Shown one piece after another: positions 3,871 through 47,951 of a stretch of DNA of 54,310 bases. Under the pieces are notes generated by a model, which made no database searches, was not told where the DNA came from, and saw only the letters and a list, made by a program, of their open reading frames with translations. This DNA comes from Selaginella moellendorffii (Eukaryota > Plantae > Lycopodiophyta), in assembly GCF_000143415.4 (NCBI RefSeq), contig NW_003314277.1:2372711-2427020 (forward strand), given 5' to 3'. The translations under genes and the position numbers were made by a program. Within the stretch, counting starts at the first letter, position 1, and every line of letters starts with the position of its first letter.

Positions 3871-4168
3871 TACCTTGAGATTTTGTGTTTAAATTATATT
3901 TATAATCACTTATTTATAAAGTTAAAAAGTATCTTAATTAAATAAATTAAGTTTTGTTACTATAACTTAACAATACAAATGATAAATATACATATAAAAA
4001 CTATAATACTAAAAGCACAATGAAGAAGTAAAATTACTCAAGACAATAGAAGAAAACTATAGATCAAAGGTACAATAGCATTAACATATTAGACAAATCA
4101 TAATAGAAAAATATATTATATTAAATAATATTTATGCCTACTTAGTGTTTTAGTTATGTTAGCAACCA

Positions 4169-4205
4169 GTGCAAGAGGTCCCGAGTTCGATTCTCGGAAT
4201 GCCCC
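4169..4205 (+). pseudogene. 3' half of a tRNA-Pro gene (truncated)
   Basis: GTGCAAGAGGTCCCGAGTTCGATTCTCGGAATGCCCC matches the plant tRNA-Pro 3' half (T-arm/B-box and acceptor strand). The 5' half is absent. Confidence 0.85.
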
Positions 4206-4251: not shown

Positions 4252-5326
4252 TTACACCTTGGAGGCTAGCACAAGACCAGCAATTCCAAAAGTGAGAGCA
4301 ACGCTTCCTCCATACTTCGTTCCAAACTCAGCAATGCTGATGAAGGAATCGATGGCAGCATAGCCCTTTGCATAGAGGTCTTTGCCAACGGTGTTGTAGA
4401 TGGCGCGAACTGGAGCAAGCACGGCCTGGTATGCGTATGGCAGGTACTCGGTTGCACCGACAGCATCAAAGATGGAGTCCAAGAACCACTCGCTGTGAGT
4501 GGATGCTAGAACATTGTTCACCATGATACTGCCAGAGAGAGTGAGTGGGTTGTAGAGGCCTAGCTTCTCAACCTTTGAGATTTCTGGAGAAGTAGCACAG
4601 AATTGTTAGAAACATCCCACCAATATATTATGCTTTTTGCTTACCAGTGATTTTAGATGATTCCCACAGGGAATCTCCAACCTTGAGGTCCTCGGCTCTC
4701 TTGTACATGAGCTTCCCATTGACAGCAACGGGAACAAAGTGGCCTGCAGTGAGTTCCAACATGTTTGAAGCGCTGTGCACTTGGAAAAACTTGGAGATGG
4801 CATCAGCATCCTTGTGGCCGAATCCATATACATCTGAATAGATATTCTTGCCCACTGCAACCTGTGGAAAAGTTATACTTGGACAAGATTTGTAAATTTA
4901 TGTGGAAGTATTCAACCTTGTCTCCAACATTAAGCTCCCTCACGAACTTAATTTCTCCATTATACATCTGAACAGTTGCATCTCCTATAATAGATTGAAC
5001 ATTGTATGAAGACAACGTGAATTCACATGAACCCTACCTGGGAAGCATCCTGGAGTGGCTGGAGGGGGTGGAGGAGTGGCTGGAGGGGGTCGAGTGCCTG
5101 GAGGAGGAGTGGCTGGTGGAGTGCCTGGAGGAGGAGTGCCTGGAGGGGGTCGAGTGCCTGGAGGGGGTGTAGCGCCTGGAGGAGGAGTGCCTGGAGGGGG
5201 TGTAGTGCCTGGAGTGGGAGGGGAGGCAGGGGGTGGCGTGGGAGGAAGTGAAGTTTGTGCCACTGCAATGCCTGCAGCGAAGGCGATGAAAGAAGTCAGG
5301 AAGATTAGAGCATTAGTATGAGCCAT
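4252..5326 (-). CDS. Secreted proline-rich (extensin/AGP-like) protein fused to a Hedgehog-type Hint/Hog autoprocessing domain, ~301 aa
   Basis: Exons 5326-5038, 4984-4917, 4861-4645 and 4583-4252 are joined by 53/55/61-bp GT-AG introns, in frame (906 nt). The protein has a signal peptide (AVA/QT), PPPGT repeats, then G|CFPGDATVQMYNGEIKFVRELNVGDKV...YSDVYGFGHKD...LELTAGHFV...GLYNPLTLSGSIMVNNVLASTH...AVLAPVRAIY and a hydrophobic C-tail. This aligns motif by motif with Hedgehog CFPG...LTAAH...GAYAPLT..GTI.IN.VLASC...AFAPFR. Confidence 0.93.
5051..5240 (-). repeat. Coding tandem repeats (15-18 bp units) encoding T/R-PPP-G/A
   Basis: Repeated gtgcctggaggagga / gtgcctggagggggt units. Confidence 0.9.
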
Positions 5327-10157: not shown

Positions 10158-13100
10158 CTAGTCGTCGGTTCCGCCATAGATGTTGGCCATGAGGACGTAC
10201 GCCGGTCCGTACGCCGCGTCCAGCCTTTGGAGGTTTTGGAAGGCCAGCCTCGCGATCTTCACATTCTTCCACTTGTGACAAGCGCTGAGAATCGCCGTCC
10301 AGGCCACGGAAGAATTCGATGGCGATTCTTCCAAGAGCTTGGACGACTCCACCATCGCCACTGCTGATTCGAGCTCGTTGTTCCTGCCAAGGATATCGAC
10401 CATGCAAACGTAGTGCTCGATGCCTGGAGAAACTCCATACCTCGGCTCCATCGCATGGAAGTAGCTCTTTGCTCGATCGGCCAGGCCGGCGTGGCTGAAT
10501 CCAGTGAGCAGCGACACGAAAGTCACTGCCTCGGGCTTGAGTTCTTCGTGCCGCATTTGCCGAAACATTCCAGCAGCGTTTTCCATGTCTCCCTGTCGGC
10601 TGTATCCCGAGATCAGCGCCGCGAAAGCCACCGAGTCCCTGCGAGTTTGCTTGTCAAAGACATGCCGGGAATGAACCATGCAGCCGCATTTACCGTAGAA
10701 GTCGACCAGGCATGTCTCGAGAACTGGATCGTCTTCCAGGCCGTGACGGGAGAGACGAGCGTGGATCGCTTTGCCGGTGTCCATGGCGACGACGCTACCG
10801 CAGGCCTTGAGCGCCGCGGCCAAAGTCCGGGGATCCTGCTCAAACCCGTTAGCTTGCATCCAGAAGAAGATCTCGAGAGCTAGCTCACCTTGGTCGCCGT
10901 CGGCGTATCCCTGGATCAAGGCGTTCCACGAGACGGTTGTGTGGGACTCCATCTTGTCGAACACTCGACGAGCGTCGAGCACACTCCAGCACTTTGCGTA
11001 CATGTCCACCAGCGTGTTTCCCACGAAGATCTTCGTGTCGTCGCCTCCACTAGCGGCTTGCGAATGGACAGCCATCCCTTTGTCCAGTGATCCGAGCTTT
11101 GCGAGCATGCCATCCATTTGCTTCGGCTCTTCCTTCGACGCCAGGCCAGCGCAGGCCTTGAAAGCAGCGACGTAAGTGAGAGGATCTGGAGTGATGCCTT
11201 CGTCTCGCATCCTCGCAAACAGCTCTAGCACGGCCTCAAACTCGTCGGTGTCGGCGTATCCCAGCAGCAGCACAGTCCAGGATATCACATCCCTGTTTTC
11301 CATCTTCTCGAAATGCTGCCGTGTGTCTGCCATGCTTCCACACTTCACGAACATATCCAACACCGTGTTGAGGAGAAAAATGTTGGTAGAGTCACCGCAG
11401 CTCTCGACGGCCTGAGAGTAAATGCCCGTTCCTCTCTGCAGCGTTTTCACCTTCACGAGCTTTCCGTTGAATTGCTTGGCTTCTTCTTTTTCTGCTAGGC
11501 AGCAGCAGGCCTTCAATGCTGCAACGAACGTCCGAGAGTTTGGAGAGCAGCCTCGAGTTTTCATGCGCTCGAAAAACTCCAAGGCTAGCTCTCCCTCCCC
11601 GTTTTCAGCGTAGCCGAGAACCATCACTGTCCAGGAGACGACGCTGCGTGAAGCCATGCCGTCAAACACCCTTCTCGCATCCAGCATGCTCCCACACTTG
11701 GCATAAAAATCCATCGCGGTGTTTGAGACGAGCATGTCAGTGTGGAAGTTGCTCTTGACGGCTTGCAAGTAAATCTCGGTTCCCAGTTGCAGTGACTCGG
11801 TCCTCACCAGCCTTCCATCCACTTCCTTGGACTCCTCTCTCGATGCTAGAGCAATGCAAGCTTTGAGTGCGGCCACGAACGTCAGAGCATCTGGAGCACA
11901 CCCTTCGGACTTCATGCGTTGGAAAAGCTCCATTGCCTGTTCCCCTTCTCCATTTTCCGCATGTCCCAGCATGATCGACGTCCACAAAACCACGTCTTTG
12001 CAAACCATCTTCTCGAAAACCTTGCGAGCTGCAGCGACATCACCACACTTCGCGTACAAATCCACTAAGCTGCTGGCCACGAACATGTGCGACTCGTATC
12101 CCCGTTCGGCAGCTCGAGAGTGGATGTCGACGCATTTTCTCAGAGTCTCGTTATTCACGGGTTTGCCATCTAGTTTCCTTCCTTTCTCCATAGCTGCCTG
12201 AATAGCGCAAGCCTTCAAGGCCGCAACGAAAGACTGCGCGTTGGTCCCGGACTCTATAGCTTCCATCTTTGCAAACAAGTCGAGAGCAAGCTGCTCTTTT
12301 CCATTCTCGACATACCCCAGCACCAAGGCATTGAAAGTAGCGGCATCGCAGCACGCCATTCTCTCAAACACCCTTCCAGCATCCACCATGCTTCCCAACT
12401 TTGCGTAGAGCTGGACCAGCGAGCTTGCGACAAATATGTTGGAGTCGCAGCAAAACTTCGCAGCTTCACTGTGGAGATCCATGCACGTCTCTAAAACCCG
12501 GAGCTTACACGGCCTTCCACTGACTTGAGTCTCGTCCCCTGACAGGTTTGCACAGCCTTTCAGGGCCGCGACGAACGTAAGAAAATTCGGTGGAGCTCCA
12601 GTCTGCCGCATTCTCGCAAATAGCTCTACTGCCGCCTCTGCTTCTCCGTTGTCCACTGTCCCAAGAATTATAGCGTTCCAGGAAACGACGTTGTGACAAG
12701 GCATCTTCTCAAACACCATCCGAGCGTTTTCCAAGCTTCCACATCTAGCATACATACTGACGAGAGTGCTCGCGACGAAAACGTCTTGTAAGCCAGTGCT
12801 GCGTCGAACTTGAGCGTGAATAGCCAGGCCCTTCTGCAAAGCCTCGATTTTCACAAGCTTTTCTCCAATCTATAGATTTTCCAATTTAGCTAGAAGCGAA
12901 AGAAGAAAAGAAAAAAGCTTACTTGCTTGGGCGATTCCTTGGCTGCAAGACCAGTGCACGCCTTGATCGCAGAAACAATGCTTCTCGCGTCGGGAACACA
13001 CCCTTGAGCTTGCATGCGATGGAAAGCATCCAAAGCTACTTGTTCTTCACCGATCTCCACATAGCCGAGGATCAAAGTGTTCCAAGTCACGACGTTGTGG

Positions 13101-13533
13101 CGAGGAATGGAGTCGAAGACTTTGCGAGCATCTTCCATGCTGCCACACTTGGCGTACATGTTGAGAAGGCTGCTAGCCACAAAGAAGTTTGAGGCTTCCC
13201 CGGTCTTTGTAGCATCTGCGTGACAGACTTTCCCCTTGTCTAAGTCTCTCGACACTGTGCATGCCTTGATAGCAGCCAGCAAAGAAGCTCTTACCTCGTC
13301 GCGAGAAGAATCACACCGCCCATGGGCCACATTACGGCTTGCAAGCTCTCCAGAAGACCACTGGAAGAGCACCAAGAGAAATCGATAAGAAAACGCGAAG
13401 AACAGCGAGATTATACCTGTGAAATGTGTATCGACTTGATATGGCAGAGATTGCGACCAGCGAAGAGGATTTTGATCCCTTGGTGCCCGATTCTTCCAAG
13501 AAAACGAAAGATCTCCACACCCGCATTTTTCAT
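10158..13533 (-). CDS. PLS-class pentatricopeptide repeat protein with E domain, no DYW (~1088 aa); probable organellar RNA-editing specificity factor
   Basis: Exons 13533-13417 (basic, transit-peptide-like), 13360-12923 and 12869-10158 with phase-0 GT-AG introns. Repeated LVDMYAKCGS..DARRVF..M..DVVSW motifs. Ends HYVCMVDILGR...WTAILSAC...YVLMANIY. Confidence 0.93.
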
Positions 13534-13632
13534 CCAAAATCTCTACTCCATCGCGAAGATTTTGATCCCTTGGAACCCGATTCTTCCAAGAAAATGAATG
13601 ATCTTCGACGCACCCGCATTCTACTCCATCAA
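13455..13632. repeat. ~90-bp imperfect tandem duplication over the PPR start codon
   Basis: gcgaaga..ttttgatcccttgg..cccgattcttccaagaaaa...gatct...cacccgcatt..ctactccatc occurs twice. Confidence 0.8.
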
Positions 13633-16506: not shown

Positions 16507-17116
16507 GAATGTACGTGCGGCTGTAGTACTACATTCAGGTAACGATTTCCAATGCTTTGGAGTTATCCGATTAACAGATTCTTTACAGATTAATTCTTCT
16601 GTTTTGTTGGAAGAACAAAAGTAAGCATTGCTTCGAGTTGCAAACTAGCAATTGCTTTACAGCAGTCCAAGTACTGGACATGTGCCACAAGTCTGCTAGC
16701 TCTGGTTCGCTTTCTTTTTTCGGGTTTTATTATTAAAGGTAAAGTAGAGGAGACAGTCCGTGAATGGGAATGGTGGACCATCAATCCAGACTTGGAGTGG
16801 GTAAACACTTTACTTTGGCATGGGAAGGTTTGCTATGCTTCTTACTTGGCCTTAGCTCGTCTTTGTTGTAGCGGAGCTGTCAGCTGCAGCGGTAATTCAT
16901 CAGCAAGCAGGGGTCTCTGTCAACATCCTTTGCCTTCTGCGTCGAAATTGACTTCGCTTCCCCATCGCAGCAGCGTTTAAATCACTGAGGACACAAACAT
17001 CATCATGGTGGCAATGCGTGTAAAGAAGAAACGCGACACTCATACTCAATCGAGAAGCCCAGTCAAGGTAGGCCAAAAATCACCCCTTTCTTGCTGTTTT
17101 GCTAACTTCTCTACAG

Positions 17117-18772
17117 ATGGGAGGAATAGCAGCTCTTCTAGCAATTCTCCTACTTGTCTACGCGCAAGAAACATCAGCAGAGCTGAGAAGCCCCGGAACA
17201 TGGAACCTGCTGGTGAACAATGCAGGAATCTCCGCAATGCACATGGTTCTCACGCACAACAACAAGGTGATCCTCTTCGACGGCTTCAGCTCGGGTCCTT
17301 CCAACATCAGCCAGCCGAGTGGAGAATGCAAGAACACCGGAAGTCGAATCCCGGGGAAGCTCGACTGCAGCGCACACTCGGTTGAGTACGACGTCGCTAC
17401 CAACACCATCCGGCCGCTAACAATCTACACAGACACCTGGTGCTCGTCGGCGGTCACTATAGCAGACGGTACGCTTGTCCAGGTTGGTGGTCTCAACAAT
17501 GGCTCACAGACCGTGCGGCACCTCGCTGCCTGCCAGAGATGCGACTGGGTTGAATCACGCCAGAGGCTCGCGGTGAAGCGGCGGTTTTCGAGCAGCCATC
17601 TCTTGCCGGACAACCGCGTTATTGTCGTCGGTGGCCGCGGACAGTTTAGCTACGAGTTTGTCCCCAGGCAGGACAACGAAGGCGTCCACGAGCTCTCGTT
17701 CTTGGCGGAGACCAACGATCTATCGCAGGACAACCTCTACCCGTTCGTCCATCTCACACCGGATGGGAACCTGTTCGTGTTCGCAAACTCCGATTCCATT
17801 CTCCTCGACTACAAGACCGGCAAAGTCGTCAAGCGGTTTCCCAGAATGCCAGGCCTCGAGGCTCGAAACTACCCGTCCTCGGGCTCCTCAGTGATGCTGG
17901 CACTCGAGGGAGCGTCCGACTACTCGGACGCGCAGATCCTCGTCTGTGGAGGCGCCGATCCATACAACTACGCGCAGGCCAGCCGGGGGAACTTCCTCAA
18001 CGCGTCGCAAAACTGTGGCAGAATCAAAGTGGGCGACGCGTCGCCGAGCTGGGCGATGGAGGCCATGCCGATGCCGCGCGTCATGGGCGACATGCTCTTG
18101 CTTCCAACCGGGGACGTGCTCATTATCAACGGCGCACAGCGCGGTACCGCCGGGTGGCGCAACGCCCGCAACCCAGCACTCCATCCAGTGCTCTACAAGC
18201 CAAACTTGAAGCTCTACAACCGGTTCCAGACGCTCACCGCCGCTTCTCGCCCGAGGCTCCACCACTCATCCGCCATCCTCCTTCCAGACGCCAGCGTCCT
18301 TGTCGGCGGTAGCAATCCAAACGGGCGGTACTCGTTCGCCACTGCCACAGACGGGGTCTATCCAACCGACGTCTCACTCGAGGTGTTCTCTCCGCCTTAT
18401 CTCGACTCGGACTATGCCGCGCGGCGTCCCAGCGTCACCTCGGTCAGCACCGCCAGCCCCGCCCACGGCGCCCGGCTCACCGTGCGGTACCGCCTGCGAG
18501 GACACTTCTTCCCCGGTACCACCAGCGTCGCACTGCTCGCGCCACCTTTTGCCAGCCACGCGGTCTCCATGGGCCAGAGAATGATACGGCTACCACTCCA
18601 CAATGTGACGCTCGTGGACGATGCTCCAGCCTCCATCTCTGGCCGAGTCCCAACTTACGAGATCGAGACCACGGCTCCTCGCAGCGCCAGCGTTGCTCCC
18701 AGCGGTTACTATATGCTCTTCGTCGTCCATGCCGGACTTCCAAGCCATGCTACCTGGATCAATCTAATGTGA
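17117..18772 (+). CDS. Secreted glyoxal oxidase / galactose-oxidase-family (AA5, GLOX-like) protein with substituted copper-radical tyrosines
   Basis: Signal peptide; GISAMHM, DTWCSS, NLYPFVHL, RNYPSSGSSVML, PRVMGDM..LPTGDVLIINGA, VLVGGSNP and APSGYYMLFVV motifs. Intronless CDS. Confidence 0.93.
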   Translation: MGGIAALLAILLLVYAQETSAELRSPGTWNLLVNNAGISAMHMVLTHNNKVILFDGFSSGPSNISQPSGECKNTGSRIPGKLDCSAHSVEYDVATNTIRPLTIYTDTWCSSAVTIADGTLVQVGGLNNGSQTVRHLAACQRCDWVESRQRLAVKRRFSSSHLLPDNRVIVVGGRGQFSYEFVPRQDNEGVHELSFLAETNDLSQDNLYPFVHLTPDGNLFVFANSDSILLDYKTGKVVKRFPRMPGLEARNYPSSGSSVMLALEGASDYSDAQILVCGGADPYNYAQASRGNFLNASQNCGRIKVGDASPSWAMEAMPMPRVMGDMLLLPTGDVLIINGAQRGTAGWRNARNPALHPVLYKPNLKLYNRFQTLTAASRPRLHHSSAILLPDASVLVGGSNPNGRYSFATATDGVYPTDVSLEVFSPPYLDSDYAARRPSVTSVSTASPAHGARLTVRYRLRGHFFPGTTSVALLAPPFASHAVSMGQRMIRLPLHNVTLVDDAPASISGRVPTYEIETTAPRSASVAPSGYYMLFVVHAGLPSHATWINLM

Positions 18773-27370: not shown

Positions 27371-27644
27371 GTGTGAGCTTCCCTCTGTAGAAGCAAAGCT
27401 ATGTCGTGCCTACAGTTTGGAATCGTGACTCACCAGTTGCTGCTCCAAGCAGGCATCCATGTAGAAAATGCAACCTGACCCTCACCAAGGGAAAAAGAGG
27501 AATTAAGAATATTCTTTTTTTCAAGCCCTAATACAAGAAAATCACAGCCGTGAGATTGAAAAATATATTTTGTAGTTACACAAAAAGGATATAAAATGCA
27601 CCGACTACAACTCTTTAGTGCTATCTAGTGGTACAGGTAGGTCT

Positions 27645-28799
27645 ATGGCGTTATTTCTAGTGTTGGTGCTCCTCTGCTTTACAGGTATTAGTGATGTAGT
27701 GGCTAAACCTGCTCTCGATTGTGCAGCTCTACTGCTCCTCAAATCTTCCATCACAAATGACCCAATTGGATTCCTCACGAGCTGGAACAAAACCAATGTA
27801 AACTGCTGCCGAGGCTGGAAGGGCGTAAGATGCAACAAAACTACGTCCCGAGTGATCCATCTCATGCTCAGCAATGGCCAGCTCTCGGGAACTCTCCATG
27901 AGAGCGTTGGATCACTCTCGAGCCTGGAAAAGCTCGATCTTTCCTACAATCACCTGACAGGGGCAATTCCAAGCACGGTTACCAAGCTCTCTCGGCTCCG
28001 GCTGCTTGATCTAGCTTACAACTATGGATTCCAGGGCAGCATTCCATCTTCCATTGGTGGCCTTTCCAGCTTGAAGAGGATCCGGCTCCAGTCTAACAAG
28101 CTCACGGGCAGTGTTCCATCTTCGTTTGGACTGCTCTCTAGCCTCGTCTATGCGGAGCTCGATGATAACTCTCTCGCTGGCCAGATCCCCAACGCCTTCA
28201 CTCGCAACTTATCCAATCTGGCTTTGCTCGATCTCGCGAAAAACAAGTTGACAGGGCTTCCACTGAATCTCCGCCGCCTCGCACGGCTTGGAATTCTCTA
28301 CTTGAGTTCGAATCCACTCACTTTCGACACCATCCAGGGGCTCTCCACGCTGCCTTTCCTGGGCGAGCTCCACCTTGACAACTGTGGTCTCCAAGGCCCC
28401 ATTCCACCATGGTTGGCGACCCTCAAGCTTCGAGACTCAGACGACTTCCTCACGTCTATGCTGAGCTTGTCAAGCAACAGTATATCTGGTCCCATTCCCC
28501 GGACGATTTCCAGCCTTTCCAGTGTTGAGATCCTGCGACTGAGCAGTAACAAGTTTTCTGGGGCGATTCCTTCGTCCATGGGAAGCATGCTGAGTTTGAA
28601 GCAGCTATCTCTGGAGAATAACCAGCTAAGTGGTGAGATCCCCGGGAGCCTGGTAAACCTGGACTTGTTGAGGTGGTTTAACGTGAGTAACAACAAGCTG
28701 AGCGGACAGATACCTCAAGGTGGAGCGTTTTCTACGTTTGATGCTAGCTGCTTTGCAGGAAATCCAGGGCTTTGCGGAAAGCCTCTGCCTTCATGCTAG
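27645..28799 (+). CDS. Secreted extracellular LRR protein (PGIP/DRT100-like; LRRNT plus LRRs, no TM or kinase)
   Basis: Signal peptide, LRRNT (D..ALLLLK..I..DP.G.L.SW....CC..WKGVRC), LxxLxLxxNxLxGxIP repeats and C-cap FAGNPGLCGKPLPSC*. Confidence 0.93.
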   Translation: MALFLVLVLLCFTGISDVVAKPALDCAALLLLKSSITNDPIGFLTSWNKTNVNCCRGWKGVRCNKTTSRVIHLMLSNGQLSGTLHESVGSLSSLEKLDLSYNHLTGAIPSTVTKLSRLRLLDLAYNYGFQGSIPSSIGGLSSLKRIRLQSNKLTGSVPSSFGLLSSLVYAELDDNSLAGQIPNAFTRNLSNLALLDLAKNKLTGLPLNLRRLARLGILYLSSNPLTFDTIQGLSTLPFLGELHLDNCGLQGPIPPWLATLKLRDSDDFLTSMLSLSSNSISGPIPRTISSLSSVEILRLSSNKFSGAIPSSMGSMLSLKQLSLENNQLSGEIPGSLVNLDLLRWFNVSNNKLSGQIPQGGAFSTFDASCFAGNPGLCGKPLPSC

Positions 28800-28926: not shown

Positions 28927-28999
28927 CGCCGTCTGTGGGAATTGAACCCACGACCACGTGGTTAAAAGCCACGCGCTCTACCGGCTGAGCTAAGACGGC
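28927..28999 (-). tRNA. tRNA-Lys (anticodon UUU)
   Basis: GCCGTCTTAGCTCAGCCGGTAGAGCGCGTGGCTTTTAACCACGTGGTCGTGGGTTCAATTCCCACAGACGGCG forms a complete cloverleaf. A T4 run lies ~17 nt downstream. Confidence 0.96.
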
Positions 29000-29293: not shown

Positions 29294-31186
29294 TTACCTG
29301 GGAGATTTTCTGAGATTGCATGCAGCTGCAAGGTGGCCGGCATTACTAGGACCTGCAACTTTGGAGTTTGTGGCTCGATCTTTCTGCTCGGTTTGATTTC
29401 CTCCACACATTCTTGAACTGGTTTGGATATTGGATCCTGTGATTGAATTGCATGACAACGATCTCATTGCCAAGAGGACGCGCTCGCGATCCGCCCACAT
29501 CCCCTCGCCCGCGTAGATCCCAGCCATGAGGAGATAGATCGCAGCATGGCGCTCGCCCAGATCGATCAAAGCCTCAAACGCAACCTCGCCAATCTCCACG
29601 CGCCGCCACTTCCGGCACGCCGCGAGCACAGTCCTCCAAGTCACCGCATTTGCCGCGAATGGCATCTTTCTCGCCATCGCCACCGCCTCCTCGACCCGAT
29701 TCGATCGCGCTAGCAGATCGATCACGCAGTGGTAGTGCTCGATCTCGGGCTGGATCCCAAATCGCGGCTCCATCGACTCGAAGAGCTCTAGCCCTCGATC
29801 CACCTGCCCGGCATGGCTGCAAGCGTGGAGGATCGACACAAACGTCGTTGCGCTGGGGCGAAACCCATCGCCTTGCATCGCATCCAGCGCCGAGATCGCC
29901 CCCTTGGCATCGCCGGCGCGGCCATAGCCAGCGATGATGGAGCTCCATCCCACGAAGCTCCGGGATTCTTTCGCCATGGATGCGATCACGCGCTCGGCGT
30001 CGTCCATGCTGCCGCATCGCGCGTAGCAATCCAGCAGGCAATTCGCGAGGATGGGATCCGGCTGGAGCAATCCGTGGCTGGAGACGCGGGCGTGGATCGA
30101 TCGCGCCATGTCGATAGCGCCCAGATTCGCGCACGCGCCCAGCGCCGCGCAAAAGCTCCGCTGGTTTGGATTCTCCATCTGTGAGAAGAGATCGAGAGCT
30201 ATGGCGGATGATCGATCGTCCTGCTGCGCGGCATAGCCGCGAATCAGAGCGTTCCATGACACGACACTCCTCTCCTTGATCGAATCAAACACCGCTCGGG
30301 CTCGATCCAGGCTTCCACAGCGCGAGAACATATCCACGGCGGTGTTGGCAACGAAGATGTTGGAATCGCAGCCCATTGCCACTGCCATAGCGTGGAGCTC
30401 GATAGCTCGATCGAGAGCCTTGATCGTCGAGAAGATGCCCACCCTCTTCTTCTCCTCGAGCTCTCGATCGGCAAGGCCCGAGCACGCCATGAACGCCGCC
30501 ACGATCGTCCGGGAGTTTGGGACGATCCCAATCCCGCCCATGGCATGGAAGAGCTCCAGCGCGAGCTCGCATTGCTCGTTCTCGACATTGCCCAGGATCA
30601 GTGCCGTCCACGCCACAACGTCGTGGCGAGGCATTCGATCAAACACCGCGCGAGCATCAATCAAGCTGCCACACTTGGAGTAGCAATCCACCAGCGCGCT
30701 TGAGAAGAAAATGTGTTGGATCGAGTTGTTCTTCTCGGCCTTGGAGTGGAGGACCATCGCCTTCTCCAGCCACGCAACCTTGGCGTGATCGTGTTCTTCG
30801 TGCGATGCCAGGCTCGCGATCGCGACCAGCGCCGCGACATAAGCCTGCGAGCTAAGATCCACAAATCTCGACTCTAGTTCCAACCTCTGGAAGATCTCTA
30901 GCGCGAGATCACTGTCGCCATTCACCGCATACCCGAGGATCAATGCCGTCCACGACGCAAGCGTGTGGAAGGGCATGGCAAGGAAGATCTTGCGTGCGTC
31001 CACCATGCTTCCACACTTGGAGTACATGGCGATGAGAGAATTGGCAACCCTAATGTCGGAATCGAGGCACGCACGGGAGGCCTCGGCGTGGATTCCTTGG
31101 CCGCGGCCCAGATCTCTGGAATCGCGGCAGCCCTTGAGGGCCGCGAGGAGAGCCTGGCATTTGCTCTTGGGAGCGAATTTGCTCAT
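29294..31186 (-). CDS. PLS-class PPR protein with E domain (630-aa ORF; true 5' exon and 3' end uncertain)
   Basis: LIAMYSKCGSMVDARKIF, DVVAWTALI, HYHCVIDLLARS, TWRTVLAACR and YLLMAGIYAGEGMW motifs. Confidence 0.88.
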   Translation of the reverse strand: MSKFAPKSKCQALLAALKGCRDSRDLGRGQGIHAEASRACLDSDIRVANSLIAMYSKCGSMVDARKIFLAMPFHTLASWTALILGYAVNGDSDLALEIFQRLELESRFVDLSSQAYVAALVAIASLASHEEHDHAKVAWLEKAMVLHSKAEKNNSIQHIFFSSALVDCYSKCGSLIDARAVFDRMPRHDVVAWTALILGNVENEQCELALELFHAMGGIGIVPNSRTIVAAFMACSGLADRELEEKKRVGIFSTIKALDRAIELHAMAVAMGCDSNIFVANTAVDMFSRCGSLDRARAVFDSIKERSVVSWNALIRGYAAQQDDRSSAIALDLFSQMENPNQRSFCAALGACANLGAIDMARSIHARVSSHGLLQPDPILANCLLDCYARCGSMDDAERVIASMAKESRSFVGWSSIIAGYGRAGDAKGAISALDAMQGDGFRPSATTFVSILHACSHAGQVDRGLELFESMEPRFGIQPEIEHYHCVIDLLARSNRVEEAVAMARKMPFAANAVTWRTVLAACRKWRRVEIGEVAFEALIDLGERHAAIYLLMAGIYAGEGMWADRERVLLAMRSLSCNSITGSNIQTSSRMCGGNQTEQKDRATNSKVAGPSNAGHLAAACNLRKSPR

Positions 31187-46387: not shown

Positions 46388-47951
46388 CTACTTGCGGAGA
46401 AGTGGAACCAATGCAAGTGGACGAGCCCGCATGAGCGTGAACCCGACCCCCTCGCCCACGTCCACCTCTTTACCATCCGGTGTTGTCCAGTTGAACCTGT
46501 AGAGAAGATTGGCGAGAACGAGATGAACAGCAGTCAACCCCAAGTTCATCCCCGGGCAGGATCGCCGGCCAAAGCCAAACGTCATGAGTTCCGTGGCCGC
46601 ATTGAATTCGCTGCTCATCCTCTCCGGGATGAACTCCAGAGGGTTCTCCCAGATGTTTGGATCCCGGCCGATGGCGTAGAGGTTGATCAACACTTGGGTC
46701 TTGGCTGGGATCGTGTAGCCAGCTTCTTCAAGCTTTCATACACGTTGATAACAAATTCAGAGATCTAGCGAGGATCAAACCTTTTAGACTACTTACCTTA
46801 CACTCGGCGGTGGATTCGCGTGGAACCATGAGTGGCGCCGGAGGGTGCTTGCGCAGGGTCTCCTTGACAATCGCGCCGAGGTACTTGAGCTTGGGAATGT
46901 CGGCCTCGCTCACCATGGCGCTACTAGCAGGGATCACGTCGTCCAATTCCTTCTGGGCTTTTGCCAAGATTTGTGGATGAAGAAGTAGCTCCGTGAGAGC
47001 CCATCCTATCGCTGTGGCAGTCGTGTCCAGCCCTGCACTCACAGCATCCTAGCAAGAGCGGCCAGCGAGTTAGTCAACACTCAAGTCAACCCCCAGTCTT
47101 ACCAGCATGAGGCACCGGATGGTAAGGTCTGACATGTTGTCGAGGGAGAGCAAGACGTCCAGGAAGCTCTCGCCGCCATGTCCTTGCTTGGCTATGGAGG
47201 ATCGGTGCTCTTCAATGTGTGCTTGAAGCAAGGCATGGAATTTGGTTGCTAAGGTTCTCAGCTTGGGCAGCGAGAGATCCATCCATTTAAGCCATGGGAC
47301 GTAATCGCCGATGTGTAGCCTCCCGCCCAGCTCGTTCCCCTGGTGGACCAAGCGGACGAAATCGTTGGCACCGAAGGTCCGGCTCGTCCCAAACACGAGC
47401 GTTTGCATGATCTCCAAGGTGAGGACGGTGACCTCCTGGGTTATGTTCACCGTTCTTCCTAGATTCTGGGAGAGCATCGCCAGGAACTTCTCCATCTCCG
47501 CTTGTCTCACTGCCGCAAAGCTCCCCACGCGGCGCGCGGTGAAGAGCTCGAGCGTGCAGATCTTGCGGAGCTCCCTCCATCTCGCGCCATAGCGCGCGAA
47601 GATGAGATCGTCTGGGAGGATCGCCTCGGCAAACGTGAGCGATGGCCGCGAGGAGAAGGTCCTGTCGTGGGACTTGAGGATCTCTTGGGTGATCTTGGCT
47701 GACGAGATGACGATCGTGGGGGTGTAGCCCAGGCGGAGGTAGAAGATCGGGCCGAGCTTCTTGGCGAGATCGAAGAGGATGAGATGCGGCCCGCGGGAAT
47801 TGCTAGCCAGGAGTGGAATGTGGCCGAGGATTGGAAAGGCCCGGGGGCTTGGAGGCATGACATGGGAGCTGCGTGAATTAGATCGATCATAGTAGAAGAT
47901 CACCAAGAAGAAAGAAGCCAAGAAGGCGAAAAAAGCTGTGATGTGCTCCAT
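46388..47951 (-). CDS. Cytochrome P450, CYP71 clan (A-type), 3 exons, apparently intact
   Basis: N-terminal TM and PPSPRAFPILGHI; WRELR C-helix; AGLDTT I-helix; KETLR; PERM; FGFGRRSCPG heme motif. Introns ~47102-47050 and ~46796-46734. Confidence 0.92.

Follow-up and report, generated by a model that had tools for sequence, protein, structure and literature searches.

Covalent attachment of a sterol to a protein is, to our knowledge, so far known only for the animal Hedgehog ligands. The active site of their autoprocessing domain consists of Cys1, Asp46, Thr69, His72 and Cys143, of which Cys143, in an SCYA motif, forms a branched thioester, the C143A and C143D variants of Shh being dead (PMC12054796). 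The sterol-recognition region (SRR) is required for sterol transfer and is predicted to be peripheral rather than bilayer-spanning; in human SHH its helix 1 is kinked at the absolutely conserved Pro379, and Arg381 is important for function (PMC7242414). Outside animals, Hog genes were published in 2008 by Bürglin for Selaginella moellendorffii, S. lepidophylla and Physcomitrella (PMC2362128). Here we describe a gene from a 54,310-nucleotide stretch of S. moellendorffii DNA (contig NW_003314277.1; the whole stretch is referred to below as the window), which almost certainly belongs to this Hog family and in which a signal peptide and a proline-rich segment, the cargo, precede the Hog domain. 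It would encode a precursor that probably cleaves itself and that, on a reading we put forward tentatively, may pass its N-terminal fragment to a membrane sterol.

The coding sequence (CDS; 5326..4252, minus strand) is divided between four exons lying in four separate open reading frames (ORFs), which splice in frame into 906 nt comprising 301 codons and a stop, just as the original prediction had it. The spliced protein is the same, letter for letter, as the RefSeq entry P0152, which NCBI and UniRef name 'warthog protein 4 isoform X1 [Selaginella moellendorffii]'. The name appears to have been transferred automatically from the similarity to nematode Hog domains alone. Identity with a nematode Warthog was rejected, as Pfam finds neither a Wart domain nor any other domain upstream of the Hint domain, and a search of plant papers for 'warthog protein' returned none. 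Nor is it a bona fide Hedgehog: the N-terminal 93 residues are signal peptide and Pro-rich repeat, with no Hedge domain and no Pfam match in that part.

The introns are AT-rich (31-36% GC, against 53% for the CDS), and short introns are typical of the S. moellendorffii genome. Each of the three predicted GT..AG introns is exactly skipped by joints in Logan contigs of sequencing run X1 (61, 55 and 53 nt, with CT..AC ends on the plus strand), and coverage by this run spans the exons, drops in the introns and, upstream of the ATG, ends after ~20 nt. That X1 is an RNA run we infer from these joints and from coverage that is limited to the gene. Since the joints skip all three introns, the gene is transcribed and spliced as proposed. 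At 4576-4645 and 4986-5050 further joints occur in the X1 contigs, their two sides separated by 7 and 28 unmatched letters, and some contigs carry several mismatches, which shows that the same run includes transcripts from one or more close paralogues or alleles.

The evidence that the protein carries a Hedgehog-type Hint domain comes from both sequence and predicted structure. Residues 91-224 match positions 10-163 of the Pfam Hint profile (PF01079) with 90.2 bits (cut-off 29.7; E 1.8e-25), a score that places the match far beyond chance, and exons 2, 3 and 4 each match separately, in colinear parts of the profile. Only Hedgehog proteins were returned when the sequence was compared with those in the PDB using phmmer (Shh 4e-11, Drosophila Hh-C 1.7e-8). 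A family profile was derived from an alignment of 79 Hog domains from lycophytes, mosses, ferns, liverworts, algae and protists, which also underlies the conservation counts given below; this matches Drosophila Hh-C with an E of 3.7e-32 and human Shh with 8.5e-25. Based on the same alignment, AlphaFold2 (AF2) predicts a Hint core rich in beta structure and then five helices for residues 91-301, with a mean predicted local distance difference test score (pLDDT) of 93.8 and a predicted template modelling score (pTM) of 0.87. The best Foldseek matches to this model are the Hedgehog structures 6TYY (E 6e-11) and 1AT0 (E 2e-10), with template modelling (TM) scores of 0.79-0.80 normalised to the target. 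The first of these, the crystal structure of the D46H variant of Hedgehog, is also the top match of the family profile. Inteins and bacterial intein-like (BIL) domains rank below Hedgehog-C, from E 8e-7 down, and an intein, for which a C-terminal His-Asn, a +1 Cys/Ser/Thr and a C-extein would be needed, was rejected as an identity, the A-S-T-H-S motif being without Asn and a conserved helical tail, with no extein, lying downstream. The protein contains the motifs LTAGH (156-160), GLYNPLTLSGSIMVNNVLAS and AVLAPVRAIY. The profile search and the structural comparison with Drosophila Hh-C that were proposed with the original prediction thus both point to a Hint/Hog autoprocessing domain of the Hedgehog type, which follows a signal peptide and has Cys1 and TxxH intact.

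The residues of the putative active site are conserved to differing degrees across the family. Hedgehog Cys1 corresponds to Cys94 (79/79), Thr69 to Thr157 (Thr or Ser in 78/79) and His72 to His160 (78/79). At the position of the general base, Asp46, the residue is His135. In Hedgehog, mutants of this residue (D303 in the alternative numbering) cleave better with dithiothreitol, and the aspartate serves sterol activation and not thioester formation (PMC9163320). The same paper describes the engineered D46H (D303H) Hedgehog as retaining both its structure and cholesterolysis while accepting more sterols, and this variant autoprocesses in cells (PMC12054796). By analogy, a general-base role for His135 is possible. 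The residue aligned to Cys143 is Thr220, next to which His221 is found in 69 of the 79 sequences, and the position of Ser222 is Ser in 71 and Thr in six. Loss of the cysteine at this position had earlier been seen by Bürglin in moss and red-algal Hogs (PMC2362128). Either no branched intermediate would be formed or another residue, possibly Ser222, would substitute for the cysteine. Taken together, the histidine at position 46, the unconserved position 143 and the near-invariant His221 and Ser222 suggest a family-wide variant of the autoprocessing chemistry. The 'full' Hedgehog-type Hint of the original prediction therefore holds as far as the Hint fold, Cys1 and TxxH are concerned, but not for Asp46, which is His, nor for the Cys143 position, which is Thr and varies within the family.

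Beyond the Hint core the sequence is also conserved, with the pattern HSxWFLD..LPxxYQxxLxPxRxxYxxxG starting from His221 and a mean majority-residue frequency of 0.44, close to the 0.52 of the core. In the AF2 model a helix of this tail is broken at Pro249, in an A-P-x-R motif, and resembles in this the kinked helix 1 of the human SHH SRR. AVLAPVRAIY had been likened to the Hedgehog SRR; a conserved helical region with a kinked-helix A-P-x-R is indeed present, but the likeness stops there and the alignment with Hedgehog is ambiguous. Bürglin, by manual alignment, scored motif K as present in the moss and Selaginella Hogs (PMC2362128). Leads from the tail in the ESM Atlas feature search all scored below 0.9, pointed to Hint clusters and were uninformative. 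Homology of the tail to the SRR would seem plausible. The final 17-19 residues are hydrophobic, and a comparable hydrophobic 17-mer ends 46 of the 79 relatives, with Lys or Arg following it in 40 of these 46, so that the C-terminal helix is probably a membrane-spanning anchor of the Hog fragment. A C-terminal glycosylphosphatidylinositol (GPI) signal was considered as well, but in many relatives the hydrophobic stretch gives way to a basic tail of cytosolic type, for which reason a transmembrane helix was judged the likelier of the two.

At the other end of the protein, the signal peptide (residues 1-23), the 70-residue Pro/Thr/Gly repeat and the Gly93-Cys94-FPG junction are all present as originally described. 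The signal peptide reaches a Kyte-Doolittle hydropathy maximum of 2.4 over residues 6-23. In the cargo there are 37 Pro, 14 Thr, 8 Gly and 5 Ala, with seven TPPP and no SPPP, Tyr or Lys, and its DNA is made up of imperfect tandem repeats of 18/33/51 nt. Pro, Ala, Ser and Thr (PAST) together account for 83%, and nearly all of the 11 dipeptides in which Ala, Ser or Thr precedes Pro open contiguous PPP runs. No Pfam family was found in the cargo alone, and no GPI signal lies directly after the glycomodule, where there is instead the 208-residue Hog domain. Classical arabinogalactan proteins (AGPs) were taken to have a PAST of at least 50%, clustered non-contiguous AP/SP/TP and a C-terminal GPI signal; the cargo has such a PAST content, its prolines are mostly contiguous and no GPI signal follows, and it is probably not one of these. 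Plants hydroxylate and arabinosylate contiguous prolines after Thr, Ala or Ser, the hydroxyproline (Hyp) contiguity rule. Extensins are defined by repeated Ser-Pro3-5, often with Tyr cross-link motifs (PMC4769139), and this identity was rejected, in the absence of either Ser-Pro3-5 repeats or Tyr. Of the description 'extensin/AGP-like', then, the secreted Pro/Thr-rich low-complexity segment stands, but with no SPPP, no Tyr and mostly contiguous TPPP the definition of extensins does not fit and that of classical AGPs probably does not. From its composition, the cargo is best labelled an unclassified Pro/Thr-rich peptide resembling the hydroxyproline-rich glycoproteins (HRGPs). Two kingdom-wide HRGP surveys that cover Selaginella do not mention Hint fusions.

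The survey of paralogues and their N-terminal partners that had been suggested gave relatives in S. moellendorffii, where there are many paralogues, in the moss Ceratodon, the liverwort Marchantia paleacea, ferns (Adiantum spp.) and the green alga Gonium, together with many unnamed metagenomic or transcriptomic proteins. Their cargoes are diverse: a conserved domain of ~230 residues, Cys-rich modules, hevein, a four-Cys peptide, some five residues or a Pro-rich repeat. The cargo of P0021 is a hevein chitin-binding domain and that of Ceratodon P0005 a Cys-rich STIG1/CPL1-like module. The ~230-residue N-terminal domain is common to moss, liverwort, fern and Selaginella proteins (P0165, P0009, P0011 and P0166), and Pfam assigned no family to the long relatives' N-terminal domains. 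The Hog domain of the window gene is 43-49% identical to those of the 'long' relatives from Ceratodon, Marchantia, Adiantum and Selaginella. Among the 87 members with a mappable Cys1, a cargo with more than 30% Pro is found only in P0152, P0151 and P0001, all from S. moellendorffii. These form one clade (support 98/98) nested in a Selaginella-only clade of short-cargo and four-Cys Hogs. Judging from this tree, the repeats of the Pro-rich cargo expanded recently and in Selaginella alone, within a clade whose cargoes are otherwise tiny.

Genomic context was obtained for one of the Pro-rich paralogues, P0151 (locus L001), which lies on the same scaffold, GL377581.1. The two loci have ~1.23 kb in common at 88-93% identity with equal intron positions and unrelated flanks, and the common block (L001:9873-11042 against window 5454-4228) begins 128 bp before the ATG and extends 24 bp beyond the stop. 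P0151 is a dispersed duplicate of the gene alone. That L001 might be the same locus or another haplotype was ruled out, as the flanks differ and only the ~1.23 kb is common. A tblastn search of the window gave no second Hog copy.

The reading that we tentatively favour is that the precursor processes itself and that an activated hydroxyl, most likely that of a membrane sterol, resolves its thioester. The precursor would enter the endoplasmic reticulum (ER), where the signal peptide would be removed after Ala23. The Hint domain would then bring about an N-to-S acyl shift at Gly93-Cys94, aided by Thr157 and His160, as the conserved residues and the fold imply, and self-cleavage at this site is probable. 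Rather than water, an activated hydroxyl would resolve the thioester, the likeliest acceptor being the 3-beta-hydroxyl of a membrane sterol; His135 would activate the acceptor, which would be presented by the conserved helical tail, itself held to the luminal side of the membrane by the C-terminal transmembrane helix. The product would be a 70-residue Pro/Thr-rich peptide with a lipid on its C-terminal Gly, its contiguous prolines probably hydroxylated and O-arabinosylated, and the Hog fragment would remain in the membrane. Transfer of the N-terminal fragment to a sterol-like acceptor, taken as a step on its own, is rather doubtful. It is preferred to hydrolysis on account of the near-invariant His at the sterol-activating position, which is dispensable for Hedgehog thioester formation, of the strongly conserved tail, the Hedgehog equivalent of which is needed for sterol transfer, and of the built-in membrane anchor, which would set the domain at the membrane. 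As the key requirement for a Hedgehog substrate is the 3-beta-hydroxyl and not the side chain (PMC9163320), phytosterols are chemically plausible. The fully specified outcome, in which Gly93 of an O-arabinosylated Hyp-rich peptide would be esterified to a phytosterol in the ER membrane by means of a natural His base and without a Cys143-type branched intermediate, is unlikely.

A number of observations weigh against sterol transfer. With Cys143 required in Shh and Thr220 in its place here, the chemistry cannot equal that of Hedgehog, and across the family the same column contains Ala (24), Ser (21), Thr (12), Val (11), Cys (10) and Asp (1), Ala or Val thus making up 35/79. The match to the Pfam Hint profile stops at position 163 of 213, leaving positions 164-213 unmatched, the tail alone (residues 215-301) gave no Pfam family, and HMMER aligns LAPVR to LAPAR of Shh, not to FAPFR, with a low posterior, all of which weakens the case that the tail is homologous to the SRR. 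In the literature searched we found no demonstration of cleavage or adduct transfer by any non-animal Hog domain. The raw-read RNA runs X22-X24 have 0-2 reads each over the gene, which neither confirm nor refute the splice sites and suggest that its expression is low in those samples. Several of these observations would be expected if water were simply to hydrolyse the Gly93-Cys94 thioester, so that a soluble, unlipidated Pro/Thr-rich (glyco)peptide was secreted and the anchored Hog fragment discarded. The intact Cys1 and TxxH would be enough to form the thioester, there is no equivalent of Cys143, the profile is unmatched in its SRR part and no adduct is known for the non-Hedgehog Hog proteins, for which reason Bürglin used the neutral term 'ARR' (PMC2362128). 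Such plain autoproteolysis needs neither the near-invariant His at the general-base position nor the ~50 strongly conserved residues of the tail, and we regard it as somewhat unlikely.

The cargo itself raises a further difficulty for the favoured reading. Sister paralogues, whose Hog domains are 86% identical, have cargoes of only about five residues (TNTTG, TNTNNS), and among the Pro-rich paralogues, whose Hog domains are 93-95% identical, the cargo measures 70, 50 or 48 residues through in-frame repeat indels. Repeats prone to slippage would be expected to vary in length in this way, and the case for the cargo as the purpose of the system is weaker for it. It may instead be the membrane-tethered Hog fragment, or the processing itself, that functions, with the N-terminal segment serving as a pro-peptide or stalk that could be dispensed with and its repeats being near-neutral products of slippage. 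The imperfect tandem array of the cargo DNA would fit this, and Bürglin attributed the Thr-rich stretch of Thog to polymerase slippage (PMC2362128). However, the frame and the Pro/Thr/Gly composition are kept in all three paralogues across the indels, and the diversity of cargoes in the family, from hevein and Cys-rich modules to the 230-residue domain, suggests that the Hog domain is a delivery module; a functional Hog fragment with a dispensable cargo is accordingly improbable in our view. A catalytically dead relic, a protein that is made and never processed for want of a Cys143-type second nucleophile, would be in line with the failure of C143A and C143D Shh to autoprocess (PMC12054796) and with the Thr found here and the Ala or Val found in many relatives. 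It is very improbable, given that Cys1, Phe, Pro, TxxH, His135, NPxT and the tail motifs are near-invariant across the 79 sequences and that the ORF is intact, spliced and transcribed. The ratio of non-synonymous to synonymous substitution rates (dN/dS) between the Hog regions of the window gene and L001 is 0.32, which indicates purifying selection, although it is based on 21 differences only (10 synonymous and 11 non-synonymous). The least probable of these alternatives is transfer to a hydroxyl other than that of a sterol, such as one on a wall polysaccharide or on some other glycan or lipid, which would covalently cross-link the Hyp-rich peptide. Any activated hydroxyl can resolve a thioester, the acceptor geometry of D46H Hedgehog is relaxed (PMC9163320), and the family gives no clean match to the Hedgehog SRR. 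Against this, there is no precedent, the C-terminal membrane helix would set the active site at the membrane and not at the wall, and Hedgehog is processed in the ER (PMC12054796), before wall polymers are met, as we assume for the plant Hog. Resolution of the thioester by a membrane sterol is the reading that we retain, on the tentative footing given above.

The features of the gene are listed in the table.

Features of the Hog gene and its product; coordinates are positions in the window, residue numbers refer to the 301-residue protein
Feature	Position	Strand	Description
Whole CDS	4252..5326	-	301 residues and stop; identical to RefSeq P0152
Exon 1	5038..5326	-	Signal peptide, Pro-rich cargo, Gly93-Cys94 and first Hint residues; phase-1 end after CCCAG
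Intron 1	4985..5037	-	53 nt, GT..AG; skipped by an X1 contig joint of 53 nt (CT..AC ends, plus strand)
Exon 2	4917..4984	-	68 nt; N-terminal strands of Hint; Pfam Hint profile positions 17-38
Intron 2	4862..4916	-	55 nt, GT..AG; X1 contig joint skips 55 nt
Exon 3	4645..4861	-	217 nt; central Hint with FGH (His135) and LTAGH (Thr157, His160); profile positions 46-92
Intron 3	4584..4644	-	61 nt, GT..AG; X1 contig joint skips 61 nt
Exon 4	4252..4583	-	Last part of Hint (LYNPLT, ASTHS), then helical adduct-recognition-like region, hydrophobic C-terminal helix and stop; profile positions 132-168
Signal peptide, residues 1-23	5258..5326	-	Hydrophobic core and AVA-Q motif; cleavage after AVA predicted from the AxA rule
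Cargo, residues 24-93	5048..5257	-	70 residues; 53% Pro, 20% Thr, 11% Gly
Predicted self-cleavage site, Gly93-Cys94 codons	5045..5050	-	Cys invariant, 79/79 family members
Hint domain, residues 94-222	4492..5047	-	Spans introns 1-3; predicted by Pfam PF01079, AF2 and Foldseek
His135 codon	4814..4816	-	At the Hedgehog general-base position Asp46/Asp303; His in 76/79
Thr220 codon	4498..4500	-	Aligned to Hedgehog Cys143; Ser222 (4492-4494) conserved instead
Helical adduct-recognition-like region, residues 223-274	4336..4491	-	Four predicted helices; Pro249 and Arg251 (4405-4413) each 77/79
C-terminal hydrophobic helix, residues 283-299	4261..4311	-	Followed by Lys-Val-stop; hydropathy 1.65-1.75; predicted helix 275-300

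Some 50-100 nt downstream of the Hog stop codon, at 4156-4200, lies the 3' half of a tRNA-like sequence (T-arm and acceptor-like, GGTCCCGAGTTCGATTCTCGGAATGCCCCA), not called by ARAGORN, which may be a remnant of a tRNA-derived repeat in the 3' untranslated region. Elsewhere in the window, neighbouring ORFs and a tRNA are found at 10158-13537 (-), 17099-18772 (+), 27618-28799 (+), 28927-28999 (-), 29294-31186 (-) and 47070-47951 (-). They comprise two pentatricopeptide repeat (PPR) genes, an E motif being present in one, a secreted glyoxal-oxidase-like enzyme, a leucine-rich repeat (LRR) ORF, tRNA-Lys(UUU) and a cytochrome P450 fragment. These are ordinary plant nuclear genes with no evident link to the Hog gene. 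The window includes 100 Ns. Runs X5-X15, labelled as two other organisms, contain 22-37% of the sampled words of the window at near identity, and may come from close relatives or from differently labelled samples.

The novelty originally attached to the gene was overstated, the family and its occurrence in Selaginella having been published in 2008 (PMC2362128) and the exact protein being already annotated in RefSeq. It had also been said that no functional description of such an anchoring or cross-linking route was known for plants, and a literature search likewise found no functional study of plant Hog proteins. What this locus adds is the lineage-specific subclade with a Pro-rich cargo. The natural His at position 46, the variable position 143 with a conserved Ser two residues on, and the C-terminal membrane helix are not found in the text of PMC2362128. 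The gene offers a compact, expressed test case, with 301 residues, a 70-residue cargo that is easily followed and close paralogues set apart chiefly by the length of the cargo. From it one could learn whether plant Hogs cleave, what gets attached, and whether a natural His can support the reaction without Cys143. Were sterol transfer to be confirmed, a cell-surface glycopeptide of plants would have a sterol-based lipid anchor independent of GPI, the reaction would be a mechanistic variant of Hedgehog cholesterolysis, and sterol-transfer chemistry would be dated to before the animals. Should only hydrolysis be found, this would still define the role of the conserved tail.

Among known systems the closest match, by sequence and by fold, is Hedgehog-C (1AT0/6TYY, SHH-C). 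In common with it the Selaginella protein has G-C-F at the predicted site of cleavage, the TxxH motif, a residue at position 46 that can ionise and, after the Hint domain, a helical region kinked at A-P-x-R. In contrast to Hedgehog it has no Hedge signalling domain, His replaces Asp46, the conserved Cys143 is absent (SCYA becoming STHS), and the tail is longer, with extra helices, and appears to end in a membrane-spanning helix. The plant Hogs of Bürglin (pSm, pSl and pPp Hog; PMC2362128) are of the same family and species, with a signal peptide and Hog motifs J and K, and in them too the motif-J Cys is replaced, by Ser, Thr or Asp; their N-terminal part, however, is the conserved domain of ~230 residues, where the window gene has its 70-residue Pro/Thr/Gly repeat. 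Short or repetitive cargoes have been described elsewhere: Thog of the nematode Xiphinema has ~70 Thr/Ser, Shog1/2 have 15-25 residues and the choanoflagellate Hoglet has a Thr stretch of ~200 residues (PMC2362128). As in these, a signal peptide is followed by a short or repeat-only segment prone to O-glycosylation and then by the Hog domain, and short and repeat forms occur in one genome. In contrast to Thog and Hoglet, the cargo here is dominated by Pro (TPPPG-type) and is of the plant hydroxyproline-glycoprotein type, not mucin-type, and this pattern of short and repeat cargoes seems to have arisen independently in Selaginella. With the GPI-anchored classical AGPs and extensins the protein shares a secreted, PAST-rich Pro-repeat backbone on which Hyp-O-glycans could be placed; should the sterol step prove real, a further likeness would be a lipid anchor at the C-terminus of the cargo. 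It differs from them in that there is no Ser-Pro3-5 and no Tyr motif, the prolines are contiguous rather than alternating, and the place of the GPI signal is taken by a Hog domain.

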